From positions 124,001 to 188,000 of IMG/VR virus record IMGVR_UViG_3300032245_001860: DNA of 64,000 bases; one strand, written 5' to 3'. Under the pieces are notes generated by a model. It searched no databases, was not told the DNA's origin, and saw only the letters and a program-made list of their open reading frames with translations. Position 1 is the stretch's first letter; each line of letters begins with the position of its first letter. Of the stretch, positions 6,575 to 20,940 are shown one piece after another. The position numbers and the translations under genes were made by a program.

Positions 6575-8917
6575 ATGGCAACAAGAAACTCATTGGCATC
6601 AGCAATCAGAACATCAGCATATTCTGTCACTGGTGAATCTGCAAAAGGGTCTGGATTCAATCAAGATCGAAACTATGCAAACAGTAGAATAAATCCTGGT
6701 TTGGGACCGAGTGTCAGACAGGCTCAGTCTATGAACACTGTAACCACTTCTCCAAACTTTTATTCTCCGTTCCTTACCCCTTCATCATTTCAAATCCCAA
6801 ATGCACGAAGAGAAGTTTATCTTTGGGCTAACTGGTGGGTAAATAATGAGCCGAAAGTTGCTGCAGCCATTAACTTCTACACAAACTTTCCATTTTCAGG
6901 TTGGGAATTAGAATGTTCTTCTACATATGTAAAAGACTATTTTGAAAAACTTGTTGAAAAGTTAAACTTCCAAAAATGGCTTCCTCAAATTGCGCACACC
7001 TATTATCTTTTAGGTGATTCTTTTGTTCTTTTATCAATTGAATGCGAGCACTGTAATGGTAGCGGTTGGAATGAAAAGAAGAACGAAGACTGTACTCATG
7101 ATGGTGCGTCTTGGAAATCTATTTCTATCTTAAATCCTGACAGTGTGTTAAAAACCCCAGGAATGCTTGATCAAGAAGGCACTTATGTTTACAGACCAAG
7201 TGCAGAAGAAATTAGAGTTGTCAATGAAAGACAACCTAAAGAAATTTATGACTCAATTCCTGATAGTGTAAAAAGAATGATTTTGAAGGGTGATCCAATC
7301 AAGCTCAATCCTTTATCGATTCACCACTTTAAGCATGGATCAAATCCTTGGGAAGATTATGGAACGTCATTGATCAGACCATTATTTCCTATTCTCACAT
7401 ATAAGGATAAATTGCGTCAAGCTCAGTTTATGATTGCTGATAGATTAATTCTTCCTATCAAAGTTGTCAAAATTGGTTCTGATACTCGCCCAGCATCACA
7501 AGAAGATATTGATGGCGTACAAGATGAACTTGCTGCACTTGCTTCTGATCCTAACCTGACCCTCGTAACCCACCATAACTTTGACCTTGAATGGTATGGT
7601 GCAAATAGTAAGTTCTATGTTGTTACTCCAGAATTTGAAGAAATTAATTCAGAACTTTTAGATGGCTTGATGCTTTCTAAGGCTTTACTTAATGGTGAAG
7701 GACCAACTTATGGAAATGCACAAGTTGGCCTTATGGCAATGGCTCAAAGATTAGAGACATTCAGAAGAGAAGTAGCTCACTGGATTGAATTGAAAATATT
7801 TAGACCAGTTGCTGAGTGGAATGGATTTGTTGTTGAGGGAGAAAGAGGACAAGAAGAGATTATCTACCCAACAATAAAGTTTAATGATTTGCAACTAAGA
7901 GATGATTCGCAAAAACTTCAGATTATGGCTACTGCAAATCAACAAGGTGTTATTTCAAACACTTCGCTAATTGAAGCTTTTGGACTTGATGTTGACCAAG
8001 AAATTGAAAGACTAAGATTTGAACAAGGCGCAAGTTTTATGAAAGAAGGAAACTTTGGTGTTCCAAGTTTCTCTATGAACTTGCAATCAGGACCCGTCAC
8101 TGGGCAGGGTTTTGCAGGTCAACAAGCAGCTCCAGGCGCAGCTCCTCCTGGTGGAATGATGGGTGGAATGCCTGGGATGGAAGCTGGTGGAATGACACCC
8201 CCTATTGCATCATCAAAAGAAGAAAACTATCGTTTAGCATCTATTGTTATTAATCAACTTTACAATGACGCATTAGAAACAAAGAAAGAGCTTTATGGCA
8301 AAAGATATGCCTCAAAAACAATAAAGTCTGCTGCGCATGAAGGATTTATCCAATCAATTATGCCTGTCACTGGTAGAGGTATCCATGGTCCACTTCCTGA
8401 GAAATATGAAGGATTCAATAAAACATTAAGTCCTGAAATTCTTGGTGGTAGTCTTTGCTCTCCATTAAATATTGAAGCTAAATTCGAATATAGACTTGCA
8501 ATGAGTTCAAATGATGAAAATGTAAGAACAGCTTTCAAGCAAAAACAAGAAATGAATCAGCCAAGCTTATATACATCTATTGAAAAGAAACTTTATGGAT
8601 TGTTACTTTCATTAAACATGCCTTATTCTTTATTTGCTCAATACTCTGCAGGACCAACAGGTGATTACACTTTGGATGCAGCTATTCCACAATTGGGCAT
8701 TGGAATAGAAGCTGACGGAGAAATCTGGCATAATAATTTTGACAAGATTGCTAAAGATAAAAAAAGAGATAGTGAATTAGCAAACAATGGATGGATTATC
8801 TTAAGGTTCACAGACAAAGAATTAAATGATCATCCAAATGATGTCTTGAATGTAATTATGCAAGGTATTAGAAAAAGAACAGGACAATCTAATAGCCCAG
8901 AAGAACAAACATTATAA
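6575..8917 (+). CDS. Portal protein with a C-terminal DUF559/Vsr-like endonuclease domain
   Basis: Portal-like segments (EPKVAAAINFYTNFPF, IHHFKH...YGTSLIRP, LSKALLNGEGPTYGNAQV, RREVAHWIELKIFRPVAEWNGF) and position before protease/scaffold/MCP. C-terminus: SIEKKL...AQY...YTLDAAIP..GIGIEADGEIWH...DKKRD..L..NGWIILRF. Confidence 0.85.
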   Translation: MATRNSLASAIRTSAYSVTGESAKGSGFNQDRNYANSRINPGLGPSVRQAQSMNTVTTSPNFYSPFLTPSSFQIPNARREVYLWANWWVNNEPKVAAAINFYTNFPFSGWELECSSTYVKDYFEKLVEKLNFQKWLPQIAHTYYLLGDSFVLLSIECEHCNGSGWNEKKNEDCTHDGASWKSISILNPDSVLKTPGMLDQEGTYVYRPSAEEIRVVNERQPKEIYDSIPDSVKRMILKGDPIKLNPLSIHHFKHGSNPWEDYGTSLIRPLFPILTYKDKLRQAQFMIADRLILPIKVVKIGSDTRPASQEDIDGVQDELAALASDPNLTLVTHHNFDLEWYGANSKFYVVTPEFEEINSELLDGLMLSKALLNGEGPTYGNAQVGLMAMAQRLETFRREVAHWIELKIFRPVAEWNGFVVEGERGQEEIIYPTIKFNDLQLRDDSQKLQIMATANQQGVISNTSLIEAFGLDVDQEIERLRFEQGASFMKEGNFGVPSFSMNLQSGPVTGQGFAGQQAAPGAAPPGGMMGGMPGMEAGGMTPPIASSKEENYRLASIVINQLYNDALETKKELYGKRYASKTIKSAAHEGFIQSIMPVTGRGIHGPLPEKYEGFNKTLSPEILGGSLCSPLNIEAKFEYRLAMSSNDENVRTAFKQKQEMNQPSLYTSIEKKLYGLLLSLNMPYSLFAQYSAGPTGDYTLDAAIPQLGIGIEADGEIWHNNFDKIAKDKKRDSELANNGWIILRFTDKELNDHPNDVLNVIMQGIRKRTGQSNSPEEQTL

Positions 8918-9071: not shown

Positions 9072-12000
9072 ATGAAAAAGGTTGCAAAAGGTGGAGCAAT
9101 TACTATCAATAGTTTCTTAAATGAAGGTGATAGAAATGTAGCCAGAAATCACATGCTAAAGACAGCCTCCTCAAATATGAGAGAAGCTGCAAAAATTGGT
9201 TTGCAATCATTATATGCTGATCCGAAAGAAGTTTTAGAAAAATACAAAGATTTTGATATTGTTAAAGAAATGCAAGCTCGTAAAGGAGCTAAATTACTTT
9301 GGGTTAGAGCCAGAGCAATAGATGCAGATACTGTCAATGCAAATGGTGACTATTTTTCAAAAGAAGAACTTCTCAAGGAACATGAAATTAAGGGTGAAAA
9401 AATCCCTTCATATAAAACTTTTGAAGGCGTTCCAATTTACACTAACCACAAAAATGATGATATAGAACAAGCTAAAGGAATGGTTGTCTATGCAGAATGG
9501 GACGATAAAGAAAACTGTGTTTATTGTACCTTCTTTGTAGATGAAGAAGCTTATCCTGACATCGCAAGAAATATTAGAACTGGAGTAATTCATGATGTTT
9601 CTATGGGATGTTCTGTTGACTATGGTATTTGTTCAAAGTGTAAAAATAAAGCTTACACTGAAAAAGATTATTGTGAATGTTTGAAAAAATTTAAAGGCAA
9701 GACAGATCCTCAAAGTGGCAAAAAAGTTTATGAAGAAAACTACAAGTTGAAATTTATTGAACTTTCTTGTGTAGGTGATGGTGCTTTTGAAACTTGTGAA
9801 ATTCAAGAAATCTATGATGTAGATGATGTTTTAAGTGCTGCTGAAGATTTAGAAAAGAAAGCCAATGAAATATGTTCAAATATTGTTTTGGCTTTTGATG
9901 GTGCTCCTTCAAACCCAGCTGATAGATTGGCATATGAAAACTGTTTAAGAACCGCTCAATTTGCTTCTAAGACAGCAATAAAACTTGCTCAAAACGCTGG
10001 TACTTTAGTGGGTGGTCCTCTATTAGCCGGACCTGGTGCAAATCAAAATTCTACTGTATCAGCAGTTCTACAAGGTTTAGGTATTGATCCAAGATCAGCG
10101 CTTAATGTTTTAGACTTGATCAACTTATCACTTAACTTTCTTGAAGTTGGTGTTATGAATTTGTTTGCAAGAAAAGATAATGTTGACCTTACTCACGTTG
10201 GCAAGATTACTAAAGCAATGGCTGATTTACAGGGCACCATGCAAGATATGATTGATGATGGTGTTGATGTAGGATCTGGACAAAGACCACAACCAATCAA
10301 TGCAGGACAACAAACACAACAAGCTGTCGCACCTGCTCAAAATCCAACTAATGCTAATGTTGGATTAGCAAACTACACTAATACTGGAAATGTTGGGAGA
10401 ATTATGGATTTTTCAAATCCAATTGAGTCTAATCCAGTAGGTGGGGGTGTAGCCTTAGCAAGTTCAAATATTAATTTAGTTTGGGCTTCAAGAGATGGTA
10501 AAAGAGAAGTATTTGCCAGTACAAATAATAATGTTAGAGAACCATCAAGCAAAGTTTTAAGACTTACGGAAAATTTATTATCTTTAAAGAATGCACTTAA
10601 TGATAGTGAAATTCAAAAGAGAGTAGAAACAGTCATTAGAGTTTCTAATGAGAGAAATAAAAACATAAAAACTAATGCGCCTATTTTGGCGGAGGGCAGA
10701 AATCAAATGGATCATTTTGCAAAAATCGCATCAGAGCAAAGAAAAAAACTTGCTGCTGCTGTCACCATCGACTTTAAAGTTGAAGATGCTTCTGGCAATA
10801 GAGTTGTTTTATCTACTGATGGATCTATAACTGGATACACTGGTGGAAAAAGAACAGCTTGGGAACCTATTTTAACTGAAAATCAAATCAATATGATGGA
10901 AAGTGGTCAAGGTACAAGAGTTGCCGCTGAACTTTTAAATGAGTATGGTAAGTTTGTTAGAACTGCTTTGCTTGATGTTAAAGAAAGATTTGATGACAGA
11001 GAAAAGCAACTTGAAGAAGTAAGATCTGGAGAAGGCTACAATGGTAAATCCAGATACGATGCTATTTCTGAACAACATAAACCTGCTGCTAATGTTACAA
11101 GAGAAGAAGCTTTACAAGACAAGCAAACTGGCATGGGTGCTGATGATGTTAAAGAAAAATTGCTTGCTGACGCTGGACTTTATGGTAGAAAAGTTAAGGA
11201 TTTAGAAGTCAAGAAGTCTTTATTTACCTTAATTGATGAAGTAAATAAGGGTGTTCCAACTGAAGTTCTTGAAAAAAGATTGCAAGAATGTAGAGCGGAC
11301 GGCAAGGCTTCTGCTCATGAGATTATGACAGCAACAATAAATGCTTTGGGTAAAGCAGTTGTTGCTGCGATGGAAACTCCTAATACAATTATGAGAGTTG
11401 CACAAACTCTTGTAAATGAAGAAGCACTTCCTGAAATGGTTGGAACAGCTGCTGCTGCTGCACCAATGGATGAAGCAAATGCAGAAAAGGCAGAATTCTT
11501 TGGAACAGAAGAAGGCCCTATGGATTCTGTTACAGCAGTCCTTAAACAACTTGGAGCAGCTGTAAGTTCTGAAATCACTGCAAAAGATCTTTCTGATGCT
11601 TTGTCGGTTGCAGTTGAAGAAGGCGAAATCACAAAAGAAGGCGTTACAAGAATTGCTGAACTTTTGATGGCTGATGCTAATATTCCTGAAGAAGGGCTTG
11701 ATGTTGAAGCAACTCCATCAAAAAATGAAGAGCTTAAGCAAGCTTTGACAAGTGCAGTTGATTCTGATAAGAATTTAATTTCTAAAGAAGATCTTAAGTC
11801 CGCTATTTCTGCTATGGCAATGTCAACAGAAGAAGCTGGAGTTACACCAGACGAAGTTGTCGATACAGTTGACAGCATGCCTGAAAATCAACTTGTAGCT
11901 GCAATTAATAGAGCAAAAACTGCTTCAGCAACCGAAGCCAGATTGAGAGCAAGAGCAAGAAGAGAATTCTGGGGTGTCAAAATTGCCTCCACAAAAGATA

Positions 12001-13289
12001 TTAGCAATAATGTTATTGGCTGGCTTGCTGATTATTCTACAAACTTTGATATTTCTACCAAGAAAATTGCTTTAGCTGCTAAGAGACTTTGTGAAGATTA
12101 TGAAGTTGCTGAAAGATTGGTAGCGAAGGCCATTGAAACAAAAAATTCAATGGAAAAAACTGCTGGAATGAAGGTTACTCAAAACAAAACTGAATCTCTT
12201 ACTTTTGTTTGTACTGCAGAAGATTTAGATGGTATTTCTCCATCAGACGAAGGCTTTGAAGAATCATTCAAACAAAAGGCTATTTCTGTTCTCCAAGGTC
12301 ATGGATTTACTGTTGATCCAGGGACATTTACATTTACAGATTTGAATGTAAGTAGTACCGGAGATATTACAGCAAGAGTTTCAACAAATGTTACTAAATC
12401 TTTTGATGTTGATGAATCAACTGAAATGGATGCAGAATCACCTGTAGATGAATCTATTGAAGGGACTGTTGAAGGTCCTGTTCAAAATGGCGAAATTGTC
12501 ATGACAGATGCTGCAAGAGTTGCAAGAAGAGAAAGAAGAGCACAACTTTTAGCAAGATATGCTCAAGTTCCTGGTATGGGTGCTGCACCTACTGGACCAG
12601 CCCCTGGTCCAGTAGATCCTAATCTTGGAATCGGAGCTGCACCTGCAGCAACTGATCCTGGTATTTTAGGTATGACTGGTGGAACTCCTGAAGGAGAAGA
12701 TGAAGACCCTATGGCATCAGGAGACACAGAACCAGGCGAAAAGAAACCTTGGGGAAGCATTTGTCCAGTTTGTGGATCTGATGATGTAAACATTTCAGAA
12801 TCTAATGCAGACTGTCAATCATGTGGAACAACTTACAAGATTCTTCAATCTATTGAACTTATTTCACTTGGTGAAAAGGGTAAGGATGGAGCTGCACCTG
12901 AAGAAGGTGGAGAAGATCTTATGGGTGGTTTAGGTGAAATGACTGCACCTGCAGAAACTCCTATGCCAGGTGCTGAAGCTGGAATGGGTGCTCCTGCAGC
13001 TCCTGCAGCTCCAGGTATGGCTCCTGTAGCTAACCTTAAATCAATGTTTAGATTAGCTGCAACTGTAGATTCTGATGTATATCTAAGAACAGCAATGCCA
13101 GACTTTGATAGAGCAACAGAGAAGAGATTGCCAGTAGGTATGATCTGTCCAAGTTGTGGTTCAAGAGAAGCACACAAAGTTAGTAATAATACCTTCTGCT
13201 ATGACTGTGGAAACTATTCAAAAACAACAGTTGCATCCAATAAGAAGAATCCTTCAAAACTTGATGTAACTATCACATGGATTGATTAA
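9072..13289 (+). CDS. Prohead maturation protease fused to a long scaffold/internal-head region with two C-terminal zinc ribbons
   Basis: N-terminal HK97/assemblin-type protease motifs NANGDYF, PIYTNH (His), DVSMGC (Ser), FIELSCVGDGA. Long acidic Ala-rich middle. CPVC..CQSC and CPSC..CYDC ribbons. Confidence 0.75.
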   Translation: MKKVAKGGAITINSFLNEGDRNVARNHMLKTASSNMREAAKIGLQSLYADPKEVLEKYKDFDIVKEMQARKGAKLLWVRARAIDADTVNANGDYFSKEELLKEHEIKGEKIPSYKTFEGVPIYTNHKNDDIEQAKGMVVYAEWDDKENCVYCTFFVDEEAYPDIARNIRTGVIHDVSMGCSVDYGICSKCKNKAYTEKDYCECLKKFKGKTDPQSGKKVYEENYKLKFIELSCVGDGAFETCEIQEIYDVDDVLSAAEDLEKKANEICSNIVLAFDGAPSNPADRLAYENCLRTAQFASKTAIKLAQNAGTLVGGPLLAGPGANQNSTVSAVLQGLGIDPRSALNVLDLINLSLNFLEVGVMNLFARKDNVDLTHVGKITKAMADLQGTMQDMIDDGVDVGSGQRPQPINAGQQTQQAVAPAQNPTNANVGLANYTNTGNVGRIMDFSNPIESNPVGGGVALASSNINLVWASRDGKREVFASTNNNVREPSSKVLRLTENLLSLKNALNDSEIQKRVETVIRVSNERNKNIKTNAPILAEGRNQMDHFAKIASEQRKKLAAAVTIDFKVEDASGNRVVLSTDGSITGYTGGKRTAWEPILTENQINMMESGQGTRVAAELLNEYGKFVRTALLDVKERFDDREKQLEEVRSGEGYNGKSRYDAISEQHKPAANVTREEALQDKQTGMGADDVKEKLLADAGLYGRKVKDLEVKKSLFTLIDEVNKGVPTEVLEKRLQECRADGKASAHEIMTATINALGKAVVAAMETPNTIMRVAQTLVNEEALPEMVGTAAAAAPMDEANAEKAEFFGTEEGPMDSVTAVLKQLGAAVSSEITAKDLSDALSVAVEEGEITKEGVTRIAELLMADANIPEEGLDVEATPSKNEELKQALTSAVDSDKNLISKEDLKSAISAMAMSTEEAGVTPDEVVDTVDSMPENQLVAAINRAKTASATEARLRARARREFWGVKIASTKDISNNVIGWLADYSTNFDISTKKIALAAKRLCEDYEVAERLVAKAIETKNSMEKTAGMKVTQNKTESLTFVCTAEDLDGISPSDEGFEESFKQKAISVLQGHGFTVDPGTFTFTDLNVSSTGDITARVSTNVTKSFDVDESTEMDAESPVDESIEGTVEGPVQNGEIVMTDAARVARRERRAQLLARYAQVPGMGAAPTGPAPGPVDPNLGIGAAPAATDPGILGMTGGTPEGEDEDPMASGDTEPGEKKPWGSICPVCGSDDVNISESNADCQSCGTTYKILQSIELISLGEKGKDGAAPEEGGEDLMGGLGEMTAPAETPMPGAEAGMGAPAAPAAPGMAPVANLKSMFRLAATVDSDVYLRTAMPDFDRATEKRLPVGMICPSCGSREAHKVSNNTFCYDCGNYSKTTVASNKKNPSKLDVTITWID

Positions 13290-15756: not shown

Positions 15757-16611
15757 ATGTCAATGATTAAAAGAAATACAAATGAGCAAAGAGAAGCCAT
15801 TATTGCAATGGCTCTCGAGACCCCAGAGGGTCGCACAGCTCTCGCACAAGCCATGGTTGAGCCAATCAAGACTTCCTTGATGTACCAAGCTATTGGTAGA
15901 AAGCTTCTCATGGTTGATGAGCTCCCACAAGGCGCTCTTGCAAGATATGAGAGAGACGTAGCAGTTAAGTCCTATGTCATTCCTAAGAGAGGTGCTGTTC
16001 CATCAGCTGAAGTTGAAGCAGAAGAGCTCATCGTTCCAACAATTGAACTTGCTGCTCATCCTCAAATTCGCTTGAATGAAATCAGACAAAGAAGATTCTA
16101 CATTGTCGATAGAGCTCAAGTCCGTGCTAAGGACTCCCTCCAAAGACAAGAAGATACTGAAGTCTTCAAGGTTATCAACGCAGGTGTTCCAACTGACCAA
16201 TCTATCTCTGTTTCCGGTACCCTCCAACCAGAGAACATTAACCTTGCTCTTACTCTTATTGAAGAGCACGAATTGATTGGTGCTAAGGTTGTTCTTCACC
16301 CACAAAGATACAAAGATATTAGAAACTGGGGCAAGGAATTCTTTGATGAGGCAACTCAAAGAGATATCCTCATGACTGGTCTTTATGGCCACATCTACTC
16401 AGCTGACATCCACGTTTCTACAATGGTTCCTAAGAACTCTGTTTACGTTCTTGCTCCAGCACAGTTCTGTGGTGCACTTCCAGTTCGCCAAGACATTACT
16501 GTTCTCCCAGCAGACGATCCAAAGAGACTTAGACTTGGATGGGTTGTTTATGAAGAGCTCGGATTTGCTCTCATTAACGACTATGCAGTTTCAAGAATCA
16601 CCGTTTCCTAA
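15757..16611 (+). CDS. Major capsid protein, HK97 fold (short, encapsulin-like, no delta domain)
   Basis: 284 aa; EPIKTSLMYQAIGRKLL..., AQVRAKDSLQRQEDTEVF, GLYGHIYSADIHVS, GWVVYEELGFAL; strong SD, biased codons, strong terminator behind it. Confidence 0.85.
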   Translation: MSMIKRNTNEQREAIIAMALETPEGRTALAQAMVEPIKTSLMYQAIGRKLLMVDELPQGALARYERDVAVKSYVIPKRGAVPSAEVEAEELIVPTIELAAHPQIRLNEIRQRRFYIVDRAQVRAKDSLQRQEDTEVFKVINAGVPTDQSISVSGTLQPENINLALTLIEEHELIGAKVVLHPQRYKDIRNWGKEFFDEATQRDILMTGLYGHIYSADIHVSTMVPKNSVYVLAPAQFCGALPVRQDITVLPADDPKRLRLGWVVYEELGFALINDYAVSRITVS

Positions 16612-16628
16612 TTTTATATTAGTCAAAC

Positions 16629-16663
16629 AAAAAAAGACCCTTCTTCGGAAGGGTCTTTTTTTT
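16629..16663. terminator. Bidirectional Rho-independent terminator with a cUUCGg tetraloop
   Basis: A7-GACCCTTC-TTCG-GAAGGGTC-T8. Confidence 0.9.
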
Positions 16664-16681
16664 GTCTATTTATTCTTATTG

Positions 16682-16710
16682 TTTACAAAAAGTAGTTTTA
16701 AATGTAAAAT
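16682..16710 (+). promoter_or_regulatory. Sigma70-type promoter of the sugar operon (leaderless)
   Basis: TTTACA-N17-TAAAAT, ending 7 nt before ATG 16718; no SD. Confidence 0.7.
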
Positions 16711-16717
16711 AAAAAAA

Positions 16718-17434
16718 ATGAATATATTAATTCCTATGGCTGGATTAGGCTCAAGATTTCCAAATTCCAAACTTCCAAAGCCACTTATCAATGTCAATGG
16801 TAAACCTATGATACAAAGAGCAGTTGAATCAATGGGCATTGATGGTAAATTGATTTTCATAACTCGACTTGAACACAATTTTGAATTTCAATTAGATAAA
16901 AAACTTAAAGATTTATTTCCAGATTCCAAAGTCATATCAGTCGATTATTTGACTGAAGGTCCAGCATGTACAGCCATGCTTGCTAAAGATCTAATTGACA
17001 AAGATGAACCATTGATTATAGCAAATTGTGATCAAATAATGAATTGGGACCATGAGACTTTTAATTTATTTTGCAAAACATATCCTCATGATGGTTTTGT
17101 TGTAACTTATTTTGCTAACACTGAAAAAAACAGCTATGTAAATATTCGAAATAATGGATTTGCAAAAGAGTTAAAAGAAAAGCAAATAATTTCCAATATT
17201 TCGACCAATGGGATTCATTTTTGGAAAAAAGGTAGCGATTTTGTACAAAGTGTTATAAGGATGATTGAAAAAAACGACCGTGCACCAAACGGAGAATTTT
17301 ATATAGCTCCATCTTATAATTATCTTATTGAAGAAGATAAAAAAATTGGTATCTATCATATCCCTAACTGTCAACATTGGGCAGTTGGAACAGAAGAAGA
17401 TTTAGAGGAATATTTGAGGATTAATAATGACTAA
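16718..17434 (+). CDS. Sugar/polyol-phosphate nucleotidyltransferase (true start 16718, not 16385)
   Basis: MNILIPMAGLGSRF..PKPLI.V.GKPMI, TEGPACT, IANCDQ, EFYIAPSYN, WAVGTEED. Confidence 0.85.
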   Translation: MNILIPMAGLGSRFPNSKLPKPLINVNGKPMIQRAVESMGIDGKLIFITRLEHNFEFQLDKKLKDLFPDSKVISVDYLTEGPACTAMLAKDLIDKDEPLIIANCDQIMNWDHETFNLFCKTYPHDGFVVTYFANTEKNSYVNIRNNGFAKELKEKQIISNISTNGIHFWKKGSDFVQSVIRMIEKNDRAPNGEFYIAPSYNYLIEEDKKIGIYHIPNCQHWAVGTEEDLEEYLRINND

Positions 17435-19575: not shown

Positions 19576-20940
19576 ATGCTAAAGCTTGTTGTTTTTGATT
19601 TAGATGGAGTTTTAGTTGAAGCAAAAGAAATTCATTTTGATGCTTTAAATTCTGCATTGAAAAATGTTGATGAAAAATATGTCATATCTTGGGAAGAACA
19701 TCTCAGAACATATGATGGCTTGAAAACATATGACAAACTAAAACTCTTATCTGAATATAAGGGTTTACCACTTGATAAGAGCATTCAAGAAAAAATATTT
19801 AATGATAAACAAATTTTCACAACAAGAGCACTTAATGATCTTCAAAAAAATCAAAAACTAATCGATATTTTTACCAAGTTAAAAGAAGAAAATTTCAAAA
19901 TAGCTTGTTGTTCAAATTCTGTAAAAAATACAGTGGATTTAGTTCTTGATAAGCTTGGCATTGATAAGTTTTTTGACTTAAAATTATCAAATGCAAATGT
20001 AAAATTTGCTAAACCTCATCCAGAAATCTATTGGAAAGCAATGTCTTATTTTGGAGCATTACCTGAAGAAACATTGATTATTGAAGATTCTCCTACTGGG
20101 TTAACTTCAGCATATAAATCTGGAGCTAAAGTATTAAGAGTAAAAGATCCTAATGATTATGATTTTGATAAAATACTTTCATCTTGCAATTCTGTAAAAC
20201 AAAATATTGAAAAATGGGCTGATCAAAAAATGAATGTAATTATTCCAATGGCTGGTCATGGCAGTAGATTTTCTCAAGCTGGATATACATTTCCCAAACC
20301 CTTAATAGAAGTACATGGTAAACCTATGATTCAAGTTGTTATAGATAACTTGAAAGTAGATGCTCATTTTATTTTCATTGTTCAAAAAGAACATAGAGAA
20401 AAATATAATCTTGATTCTATGCTTTCTTTATTAGCTCCAGGTTGCGATATTGTAGATGTAGATAAAGTAACAGAAGGAGCTGCTTGCACTGTATTATTAG
20501 GTAAAGAATTTATCAATAATGACAATCCTCTGGTAATAGCTAATTCAGATCAATTTGTAGAATGGAGTAGTTTAGATTTCTTTTACAAAATGAACGAACA
20601 AAACTTAGATGGTGGTATTGTTTCTTTTAAATCAACACATCCCAAATGGTCTTATGCAAAGGTAGATAGTCAGGGGTTTATTTTAGAAGTAGCTGAAAAG
20701 AAAACTATTTCTGATATTGCTACAGTAGGAATTTATTACTGGAAAAAAGGATCTGATTTTGTCAAGTATGCAGAACAAATGATTGATAAAAATATCAGAG
20801 TAAATAATGAGTTTTATGTATGTCCTGTTTATAATGAAGCTATTTTAGATGGACTTAAGTTTAAAACATTTGATGTGCCAAAAATGTGGGGGCTTGGCAC
20901 ACCTGAAGATTTAGATTATTACTTGGAAATGAATAAATGA
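19576..20940 (+). CDS. HAD-family phosphatase fused to a nucleotidyltransferase
   Basis: N-terminus FDLDGVL, CSNS, KPHPEIY, IEDSPTG (beta-PGM/CbbY-type HAD). C-terminus MNVIIPMAGHGSRF..PKPLI, IANSDQ, WGLGTPEDL. Confidence 0.88.
   Translation: MLKLVVFDLDGVLVEAKEIHFDALNSALKNVDEKYVISWEEHLRTYDGLKTYDKLKLLSEYKGLPLDKSIQEKIFNDKQIFTTRALNDLQKNQKLIDIFTKLKEENFKIACCSNSVKNTVDLVLDKLGIDKFFDLKLSNANVKFAKPHPEIYWKAMSYFGALPEETLIIEDSPTGLTSAYKSGAKVLRVKDPNDYDFDKILSSCNSVKQNIEKWADQKMNVIIPMAGHGSRFSQAGYTFPKPLIEVHGKPMIQVVIDNLKVDAHFIFIVQKEHREKYNLDSMLSLLAPGCDIVDVDKVTEGAACTVLLGKEFINNDNPLVIANSDQFVEWSSLDFFYKMNEQNLDGGIVSFKSTHPKWSYAKVDSQGFILEVAEKKTISDIATVGIYYWKKGSDFVKYAEQMIDKNIRVNNEFYVCPVYNEAILDGLKFKTFDVPKMWGLGTPEDLDYYLEMNK

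Follow-up and report, generated by a model that had tools for sequence, protein, structure and literature searches.

A portal protein carrying a conserved C-terminal Vsr-like nuclease domain in a distant relative of Bacillus phage G

The window analyzed here is a 64,000-nt stretch (bases 124001-188000) of a linear, 315,852-bp IMG/VR virus record, IMGVR_UViG_3300032245_001860, which CheckV estimates to be 88% complete. The phage (316 kb) is a distant relative of Bacillus phage G, and its portal gene, P0001, continues without interruption into an endonuclease-like domain. From the N- to the C-terminus, the P0001 protein is built from a Mu-type portal core, a linker rich in Gly, Ala, Pro, and Met, a helical spacer, and a DUF559/Vsr-like (EDxHD-type) nuclease domain. 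Relatives with the same fusion form a single clade, in which the catalytic residues are nearly invariant, and the best reading of these observations is that a catalytically active nuclease is carried into the capsid by the portal.

Both ends of the protein are recognized by sequence profiles. Portal_Mu (PF06074) matches aa 220-471 (E = 1.5e-9; 38.1 bits, against a cut-off of 23.9), five portal families of the PHROGs collection match as well (best phrog_16240, E = 2e-35), and gp14, the annotated portal of phage G, matches P0001 at E = 5e-61. Mean column conservation across the portal core is 0.76-0.95. At the C-terminal end, DUF559 (PF04480), the family named for this region in an initial annotation of the locus, matches aa 669-765 above its curated cut-off (E = 5e-8; 33.2-34.7 bits, against 20.6), and REase_MTES_1575 matches the same stretch more weakly. 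The span singled out in that annotation (8220-8917) corresponds to aa 549-780, comprising the helical spacer and the nuclease domain, and the last residues, aa 766-780, form a short, variable tail. The portal-nuclease fusion that it had proposed is borne out: one open reading frame (ORF) carries both Pfam domains, and the architecture recurs in more than 100 relatives.

The assignment of the C-terminal domain extends to structure. A profile of the nuclease domain matches the Protein Data Bank (PDB) entries 3HRL (E = 4.7e-7) and 3R3P (E = 4e-5). An AlphaFold2 (AF2) model of aa 545-780, built on 32 homologues, has a mean pLDDT score (predicted local distance difference test) of 79, with block means in the nuclease domain mostly between 75 and 94. 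In a Foldseek comparison of this model with the PDB, the best match is 3R3P (template-modeling score, TM, 0.70-0.71 on the target), followed by 3HRL (TM 0.68) and then by Vsr (1CW0, 1VSR). The predicted structure of aa 661-765 has the alpha/beta nuclease fold of the Vsr type.

The EDxHD active site was defined relative to Vsr in the description of the homing endonuclease I-Bth0305I (PMC3239194), and the equivalences of the Asp, Glu, and His residues given here (Table 1) rest on profile alignments together with that work. In P0001, the conserved set comprises E670, Q689, D701, E712-A-D714-G, W718-H719, D728, R731-D732, L735, G739-W740, and R744-F745, and the residues that had been listed as marks of an intact-looking nuclease are indeed present and conserved. 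Conservation was scored over 102 domains (P0001 and 101 representatives that are 37-60% identical to it overall): D701, H719, G739, and W740 are invariant, E670, E712, D714, D728, D732, R744, and F745 are kept in 100 of the 102, and R731 in 97. Each of the six active-site positions (E670, D701, E712, D714, H719, and D728) is thus retained in at least 100 of the 102 domains, and the domain is neither absent nor degenerate in relatives. E712 is a family-specific acidic residue at the place of Vsr F62, and D714 corresponds to Vsr H64 and I-Bth0305I N208. No Cys occurs in aa 661-780 of P0001, and the zinc site of true Vsr is therefore absent. A separate DNA-binding module (NUMOD or helix-turn-helix, HTH) was likewise not found, as no Pfam family matches aa 540-670 even at E-values up to 10. 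From this pattern of residues, we infer that the C-terminal domain is a catalytically active DNA endonuclease.

Additional evidence on the catalytic site comes from inteins. Most representatives are 1,100-3,000 aa long, owing to class-1 LAGLIDADG inteins at recurrent sites, and in 10 of them an intein lies within the nuclease domain itself, with the catalytic Glu on one side and a Cys in place of A713 on the other. The junction falls in the E-x-D motif (...G-V-E / C-L-H-P ... S-H-N / C-D-G-x-W-H). Inteins typically occupy indispensable, highly conserved motifs, and this placement fits a catalytic site that the phage may be unable to lose. More generally, the portal gene is an intein hot spot, with at least six recurrent sites in relatives P0160-P0276 and none occupied in P0001; the sites correspond to window codons near aa 85, 103, 158, 344, and 380, and between aa 712 and 713. 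At the extreme, one portal gene holds five or more inteins, and products reach up to 3,003 aa (P0268).

A word-based search found 421 relatives of P0001; the best 120 are nearly all proteins of 760-800 aa with a portal and a DUF559/MTES_1575 domain, down to 48% identity, and the same gene is encoded in 36 IMG/VR loci. The limits of the fusion rest on the absence of the domain outside the clade, and an exhaustive search of representatives was therefore made, which returned 2,922 cluster representatives at E <= 1e-3, of which 320 reach E <= 1e-30. Hidden Markov models (HMMs) of the core, linker, and nuclease were scanned over the best 150 representatives. The phylogeny was based on 130 sequences that cover 85% or more of the core: representatives, plus a few close relatives, with phage G gp14 serving as the outgroup. 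The nuclease domain is present in 116 of these. In a portal-core tree (a single FastTree run on representatives, LG+gamma, rooted on the one outgroup), all 116 nuclease-bearing sequences form one clade with a support of 0.965, so that the fusion is kept by relatives over the whole of this clade.

Ten complete portals without the domain, including that of phage G, fall outside the clade. The four tips within the clade that lack the domain are cut short or interrupted, with 0-38 aa past the core. One of these (P0245) is on a 1.9-kb contig with 2.5x coverage. In another (P0162; L064:4480-4720, NCBI GCA_040384225.1), there is a one-base shift in a G-run of the linker, and the linker and nuclease continue in the next frame; this may reflect an error in sequencing, or else a shift, real or programmed, that would yield a portal without the nuclease. 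Based on the tree pattern and the interrupted state of these tips, the domain was acquired once, with no loss seen among complete representatives. The fusion is kept down to approximately 37% portal identity.

When free-standing relatives of the nuclease were sought with a word search (aa 655-780), the only matches were short proteins from short contigs. Two short nuclease proteins that were checked start at contig ends, and they are therefore considered fragments from assembly breaks in the linker and not separate genes; assemblies frequently break or frameshift at this low-complexity sequence. On one 16.5-kb contig (L039:2900-6100), the linker-plus-nuclease module occurs with the protease-scaffold gene that normally follows the portal, and with no portal core upstream. 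The join is in low-complexity sequence, and this arrangement was taken as a probable chimeric assembly, not as a separate nuclease gene. Unrelated, repeat-rich ORFs replace the portal core on this contig, one of which has a RING-finger-like Cys/His motif.

The ratio of nonsynonymous to synonymous substitution rates (dN/dS; Nei-Gojobori, two closest DNA relatives) is lowest in the nuclease (0.005-0.009), followed by the core (0.012-0.016) and then by the linker and spacer (0.06-0.07); because dS is high (0.7-1.8) even for the closest pairs, these values are approximate, and the ranking of the regions is consistent. They strongly suggest that the nuclease is under purifying selection as strong as the portal's own. 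Among 47 diverse members, the pairwise identities of core and nuclease are correlated (r = 0.91; Mantel test, 0/2000 permutations), which indicates that the two have evolved together. The same C-terminal domain is found in all 116 representatives, and no swapping was seen. The clade is a deep one, made up of large phages that are so far uncultured and apparently from freshwater.

The tether is the least conserved part of P0001. Across the clade, linkers are 74-231 aa long (median 94) and contain 31% Gly, 10% Ala, 10% Pro, and 8% Met, and no motif is common to them. The spacer appears in the AF2 model as helices with disordered stretches; its HMM matches close relatives only, and no Pfam family was found in it. 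Five motifs of this region (RLAS, RYAS, KSAA, RLAM, and RTAF) had been put forward in the initial annotation as putative cleavage sites. All five are present in P0001, but only the first three recur, and these only in close relatives: among 32 diverse close relatives, Y552, A555, and N560 recur around RLAS, the R-x-A-S and K-S-A-A-H-E stretches recur less strictly, and RLAM and RTAF are not conserved. In regular-expression and shuffle tests on 101 linkers, protease-type [SAG]-x-E motifs are not enriched relative to shuffled linkers ([GAS]ME, 16 seen vs. 14.4 expected; [GAS].E, 79 vs. 83.4), and the only enriched words are GGM, GDMG, GAP, and GMP repeats. The proposal of specific cleavage sites is not supported. 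Cleavage by the neighboring protease is possible, given that unstructured Gly-rich tethers are easy substrates, but it has no specific sequence support. The GGM-type repeats of the tether (GGT GGA ATG) provide several in-frame ATGs after purine-rich Gly codons, and internal initiation within the tether might conceivably yield the nuclease on its own. The GGM repeats also recall the flexible tails at the C-terminus of GroEL, which occupy the middle of its ring, although this is a resemblance only.

Several known systems share features with this protein. The best structural match of the domain, I-Bth0305I (PDB 3R3P), is an EDxHD homing endonuclease from Bacillus phage 0305phi8-36, and has the same E, D, H, D catalytic set with an extra acidic residue before the His (PMC3239194). 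I-Bth0305I is intron-encoded, with N-terminal NUMOD/HTH repeats and a sporadic distribution, whereas the portal domain is an in-frame C-terminal extension that lacks a DNA-binding module and is vertically inherited. The best profile match in the PDB, Neisseria gonorrhoeae NGO0050 (3HRL), belongs to the same Pfam family; DUF559 proteins are small, free-standing bacterial proteins of unknown function or are fused to phage helicases, and none is on a virion protein. Escherichia coli Vsr (1VSR, 1CW0) belongs to the same fold class, with counterparts of the catalytic Asp, His, and Asp residues, but differs in its zinc site and its Dcm-type partner, of which the record has no counterpart, and Pfam assigns the portal domain to DUF559 and not to Vsr.

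Among virion proteins, the closest parallel is with effectors fused to portal or MuF proteins, in which a head-internal anchor is followed by a C-terminal enzyme, often a nuclease (PMC5512222, PMC5576092). Their C-terminal domains are polymorphic, are swapped between related phages, and often come with an immunity gene; here, in contrast, a single domain is fixed throughout a deep clade, at a level of conservation equal to that of the portal. PBECR, 2H, and InPase domains are listed on portals in these studies, and no Vsr/DUF559 domain is (PMC5512222, PMC5576092). T4 endonuclease VII (gp49) is similar in being a second nuclease, besides the terminase, that is tied to the portal vertex and packaging, and differs from the portal nuclease in being a separate protein of another fold that acts on branched DNA outside the head. 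It reportedly binds the portal protein, gp20. The release of arrested Y-DNA from the packaging motor by endonuclease VII is cited in a review of the T4 head (PMC9958956).

Phage G gp14, the closest cultured relative of the portal core (29.6% identity over aa 20-488), also has a C-terminal extension (648 aa in total), but it lacks a DUF559/nuclease domain and lies outside the clade. No portal with this domain was found in a collection of 50,697 phage records, where the matches of the nuclease domain are in helicase genes or beside DNA methylase genes. No portal-DUF559 or portal-Vsr fusion is described in the literature searched, and none is mentioned in the portion of a comparative jumbo-phage review that was available. 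The fusion of an enzyme to a head-internal anchor is known; new are this enzyme, its fixation across a clade, and its level of conservation.

In solved portals, the clip points outward, whereas the capsid interior holds the stem, the wing, and the crown, which is the C-terminal end, and the T4 portal tolerates C-terminal GFP fusions (PMC9958956). By homology, P0001 is assumed to form a dodecameric ring at one capsid vertex. Because the nuclease domain follows the crown end on a floppy tether, up to twelve nucleases would be taken inside each prohead, and each virion probably carries up to twelve; the earlier estimate of up to twelve domains per vertex is fair, given the crown-side C-terminus of solved portals (PMC9958956). 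We propose that a Vsr/EDxHD-type endonuclease became joined to the portal gene on a single occasion and has stayed with it since, with the portal acting as a capsid-targeting device for a virion-borne nuclease. A floppy Gly/Ala/Pro/Met tether of 50-230 residues would hold the nucleases around the inner mouth of the DNA channel, and such tethers could span tens of nanometers. The tether would be severed during head maturation (the prohead protease gene adjoins the portal gene), and the freed nuclease, of ~15-25 kDa, would leave with the DNA at infection, to work on DNA in the cell just infected. The sequence or structure specificity typical of Vsr-like enzymes would spare the DNA of the phage itself. 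Whether the nuclease is released or stays tethered, the packaged genome would mostly not be its substrate, which argues for a site- or structure-specific enzyme.

Enzymatic effectors fused to portal or MuF proteins have been described and are predicted to be packaged and injected (PMC5512222, PMC5576092), and this precedent is the reason to favor release and co-ejection. Taken as a whole, we put that reading forward tentatively, as a possibility that may well be wrong; for its separate parts, we infer the location in the capsid interior, the catalytic activity, the release, the ejection, and the target. Several observations weigh against it. The linkers have no conserved cleavage motif, which leaves the release of the nuclease unsupported. 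The domain is unvarying and unswapped, unlike the polymorphic MuF toxins, a pattern more in keeping with a core role in morphogenesis than with an effector in an arms race. The sparing of self-DNA is unexplained, because no immunity or DNA-modification gene was found: no immunity gene turned up, although no dedicated test was made, and the 154-nt gap downstream of the portal gene has no small ORF; the 316-kb record has neither a C5 methyltransferase (PF00145) nor a ThyA-like gene (PF00303), absences that are provisional in a record that is 88% complete. Lastly, there is no cultured member of the clade among the 50,697 records of the phage collection. A Vsr-Dcm repair pair and the protection of phage DNA by hydroxymethyl-pyrimidines were also considered, and were rejected for lack of PF00145 and PF00303, respectively.

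A possible, if doubtful, alternative is that the nuclease is never released, and that the DNA of the phage itself is the substrate of twelve active domains tethered around the portal's inner mouth. These domains might nick it or process an end while the genome is being packaged, once packaging is over, or as ejection begins, in a morphogenetic step and not as an effector. Vsr-type enzymes are nickases (PMC3239194), which would suit this role, as would a domain that is conserved like core machinery (in its single origin, the lack of loss or swapping, the low dN/dS, and the correlation with the core), a long flexible tether that is always present, an intein in the catalytic motif, and the absence of a conserved cleavage motif. 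On the other hand, the terminase nuclease is intact, so that no known cut is missing, and an active nuclease permanently amid its own genome needs tight control, which is unexplained. To our knowledge, there is no precedent for an enzyme that acts on packaged DNA inside the capsid, and we know of no tailed phage whose genome is cut from within it. It is on the unlikely side that the machinery for packaging or ejection includes the twelve tethered nucleases as a fixed component, and that they cut or nick the genome from within the capsid so that, for instance, an end is processed, torsion is relieved, or the DNA is freed at ejection.

The remaining explanations are less probable. A role in the cytoplasm before assembly, either as a homing or exclusion nuclease that favors the portal allele or as a late nuclease against host DNA, is distinctly unlikely, as is its corollary that the portal fusion would serve co-expression only. 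In its favor, a phage homing endonuclease, I-Bth0305I, is the closest solved relative in both fold and sequence, the viral folds nearest to the domain belong to small, free-standing endonucleases of the Vsr-like or homing type, and the portal and terminase genes of the clade are hot spots of mobile inteins. Given these nearest viral folds, a free-standing Vsr-like homing gene downstream of the portal is a plausible ancestor, and to this extent the captured homing-type endonuclease considered in the initial annotation is credible as an origin. It is unlikely to describe the present role, in view of the single acquisition, the absence of loss, the co-divergence with the core, and the missing DNA-binding module. 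One acquisition followed by vertical co-divergence is unlike the sporadic occurrence of homing genes, near-invariant catalytic residues over a deep clade are contrary to the homing cycle of gain and decay, no NUMOD, HTH, or other DNA-binding module was found, and a maintained tether implies that location matters. Improbable, too, is a fold kept without catalysis as a DNA-binding or structural plug, for example holding the genome end or nucleating the scaffold: nuclease folds are often reused as binding domains, and SPP1 gp7 is a DNA-binding head protein bound to the portal (PMC5576092), but a role in binding only would lead one to expect neither the metal-binding and general-base residues, every one of them kept in at least 100 of 102 domains, nor an intein exactly in the catalytic motif.

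It is very improbable that the portal nuclease stands in for an absent terminase nuclease and is responsible for the headful cut. The idea arose because neither the Pfam families Terminase_6N, Terminase_6C, and TerL_nuclease nor phage G TerL first found a terminase in the record (the phage G query also had no match in five related records). PHROGs, however, identify a TerL of 705 aa (phrog_2, E = 1.9e-25) at G000:C1:119776-121893, which is ~9 kb upstream and outside the window (~4.2 kb upstream of its start). This protein has Walker A and B motifs, and D501, D574, D670, D671, and D674 in its C-terminal half are invariant acidic residues. An AF2 model of aa 415-705 matches terminase nucleases (G20c TerL, TM 0.76-0.78, as well as T4 gp17, Sf6, and HK97), and these C-terminal 291 aa are predicted to have the RNase-H-like terminase nuclease fold. 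The idea was dropped; since the terminase keeps its own nuclease domain, the portal nuclease would be an additional one. An assembly or frameshift artefact that joins two genes is scarcely credible. Assemblies do break in the low-complexity linker, and one record is frameshifted there, but the ORF is continuous in more than 100 independent assemblies from JGI, ENA, NCBI, and Logan, which excludes the artefact that had been raised as a concern for this locus.

Table 1. Positions in the window of the portal-nuclease gene, its regions and catalytic codons, and neighboring head genes.
Feature	Position	Strand	Evidence or remarks
Portal-nuclease gene P0001, whole	6575..8917	+	Single uninterrupted ORF, 780 aa
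Portal core, aa 55-495	6737..8059	+	PHROG portal families; similarity to phage G gp14
Low-complexity Gly/Pro/Ala/Met-rich tether, aa 496-547	8060..8215	+	G12 P8 A7 M6 of 52 residues
Helical spacer, aa 548-660	8216..8554	+	Subfamily-specific; holds RLAS, RYAS, KSAA, RLAM, RTAF
DUF559/Vsr-like (EDxHD-type) endonuclease domain, aa 661-765	8555..8869	+	Pfam, PDB profile matches, AF2/Foldseek (predicted)
E670 codon	8582..8584	+	Corresponds to Vsr E25 and I-Bth0305I E170 as inferred from its place in the motif (the profile alignment stops short of E670); 100/102 domains
D701 codon	8675..8677	+	Corresponds to Vsr D51 and I-Bth0305I D196 (Mg-binding Asp); 102/102
E712-A713-D714 codons, putative catalytic E-x-D motif	8708..8716	+	E and D each 100/102
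H719 codon	8729..8731	+	Corresponds to Vsr H69 and I-Bth0305I H213 (proposed general base); 102/102
D728 codon	8756..8758	+	Corresponds to Vsr D97 and I-Bth0305I D222; 100/102
Protease-scaffold gene, 1405 aa, next after the portal gene	9072..13289	+	phrog_18299 head maturation protease, aa 86-241
Major capsid protein gene	15757..16611	+	phrog_2522, E 5e-67; phage G gp27 homolog, E 3e-93

The position of the major capsid protein gene identifies the surroundings of the portal gene as a head module (Table 1). The 1405-aa protein encoded immediately after the portal is homologous to phage G gp19 and is kept directly downstream of the portal in relatives, and its protease is a candidate for any processing of the portal tail. 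In this protein, a prohead protease part (aa ~52-244) is fused to a long, Ala/Glu-rich, scaffold-like region, and two CxxC...CxxC zinc-ribbon-like motifs lie near the C-terminus; the protein is conserved 3' of the portal in relatives at 38% identity. Paralogous proteins encoded at 16385-17434 and 19576-20940 (+) share a phrog_3980 domain (E = 3e-59 and 4e-81), and the second of these, within the head/virion module, is fused to an N-terminus resembling hydrolases of the HAD superfamily.

Farther downstream, very large ORFs occur in series from 43172 to 63856 of the window (+), and continue past its end to ~G000:C1:204549. Those in the window encode 1119, 318, 1388, 1096, 1233, 315, and 1327 aa, and are followed by ORFs of 1002, 1735, and 2832 aa; Pfam has no match for any of the five largest in the window, and for the 1119-aa ORF PHROGs has none either. 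The TerL is very divergent, having been missed by the Pfam terminase models and by phage G TerL, and a phmmer search of the candidate against PDB sequences was empty. It has an N-terminal extension of ~215 aa with Cys-rich motifs, and some of its homologues (~1,070 aa; relatives P0363-P0394) carry a LAGLIDADG intein. Outside the window, the record also encodes a RIIA-like protein, a DnaB-like helicase, a RecJ-like exonuclease, and the large subunit of a class I ribonucleotide reductase (G000:C1:1234-3219, 87079-88806, 97588-99393, and 102288-104720, respectively).

Portals are among the best-studied phage machines, and we know of none with a nuclease of its own. The automatic name given to these portals by JGI is "very-short-patch-repair endonuclease", and public annotation thus mislabels them as a repair enzyme. 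The intein in the catalytic motif and the multi-intein portal genes offer much to the study of inteins. Should the nuclease be ejected, the portal would serve as a carrier that brings an injected enzyme to the capsid in stoichiometric amounts; should it be retained, packaging or ejection would include a so far unknown DNA-cutting step. Under either reading, the nuclease domain is small, soluble-looking, and directly assayable.

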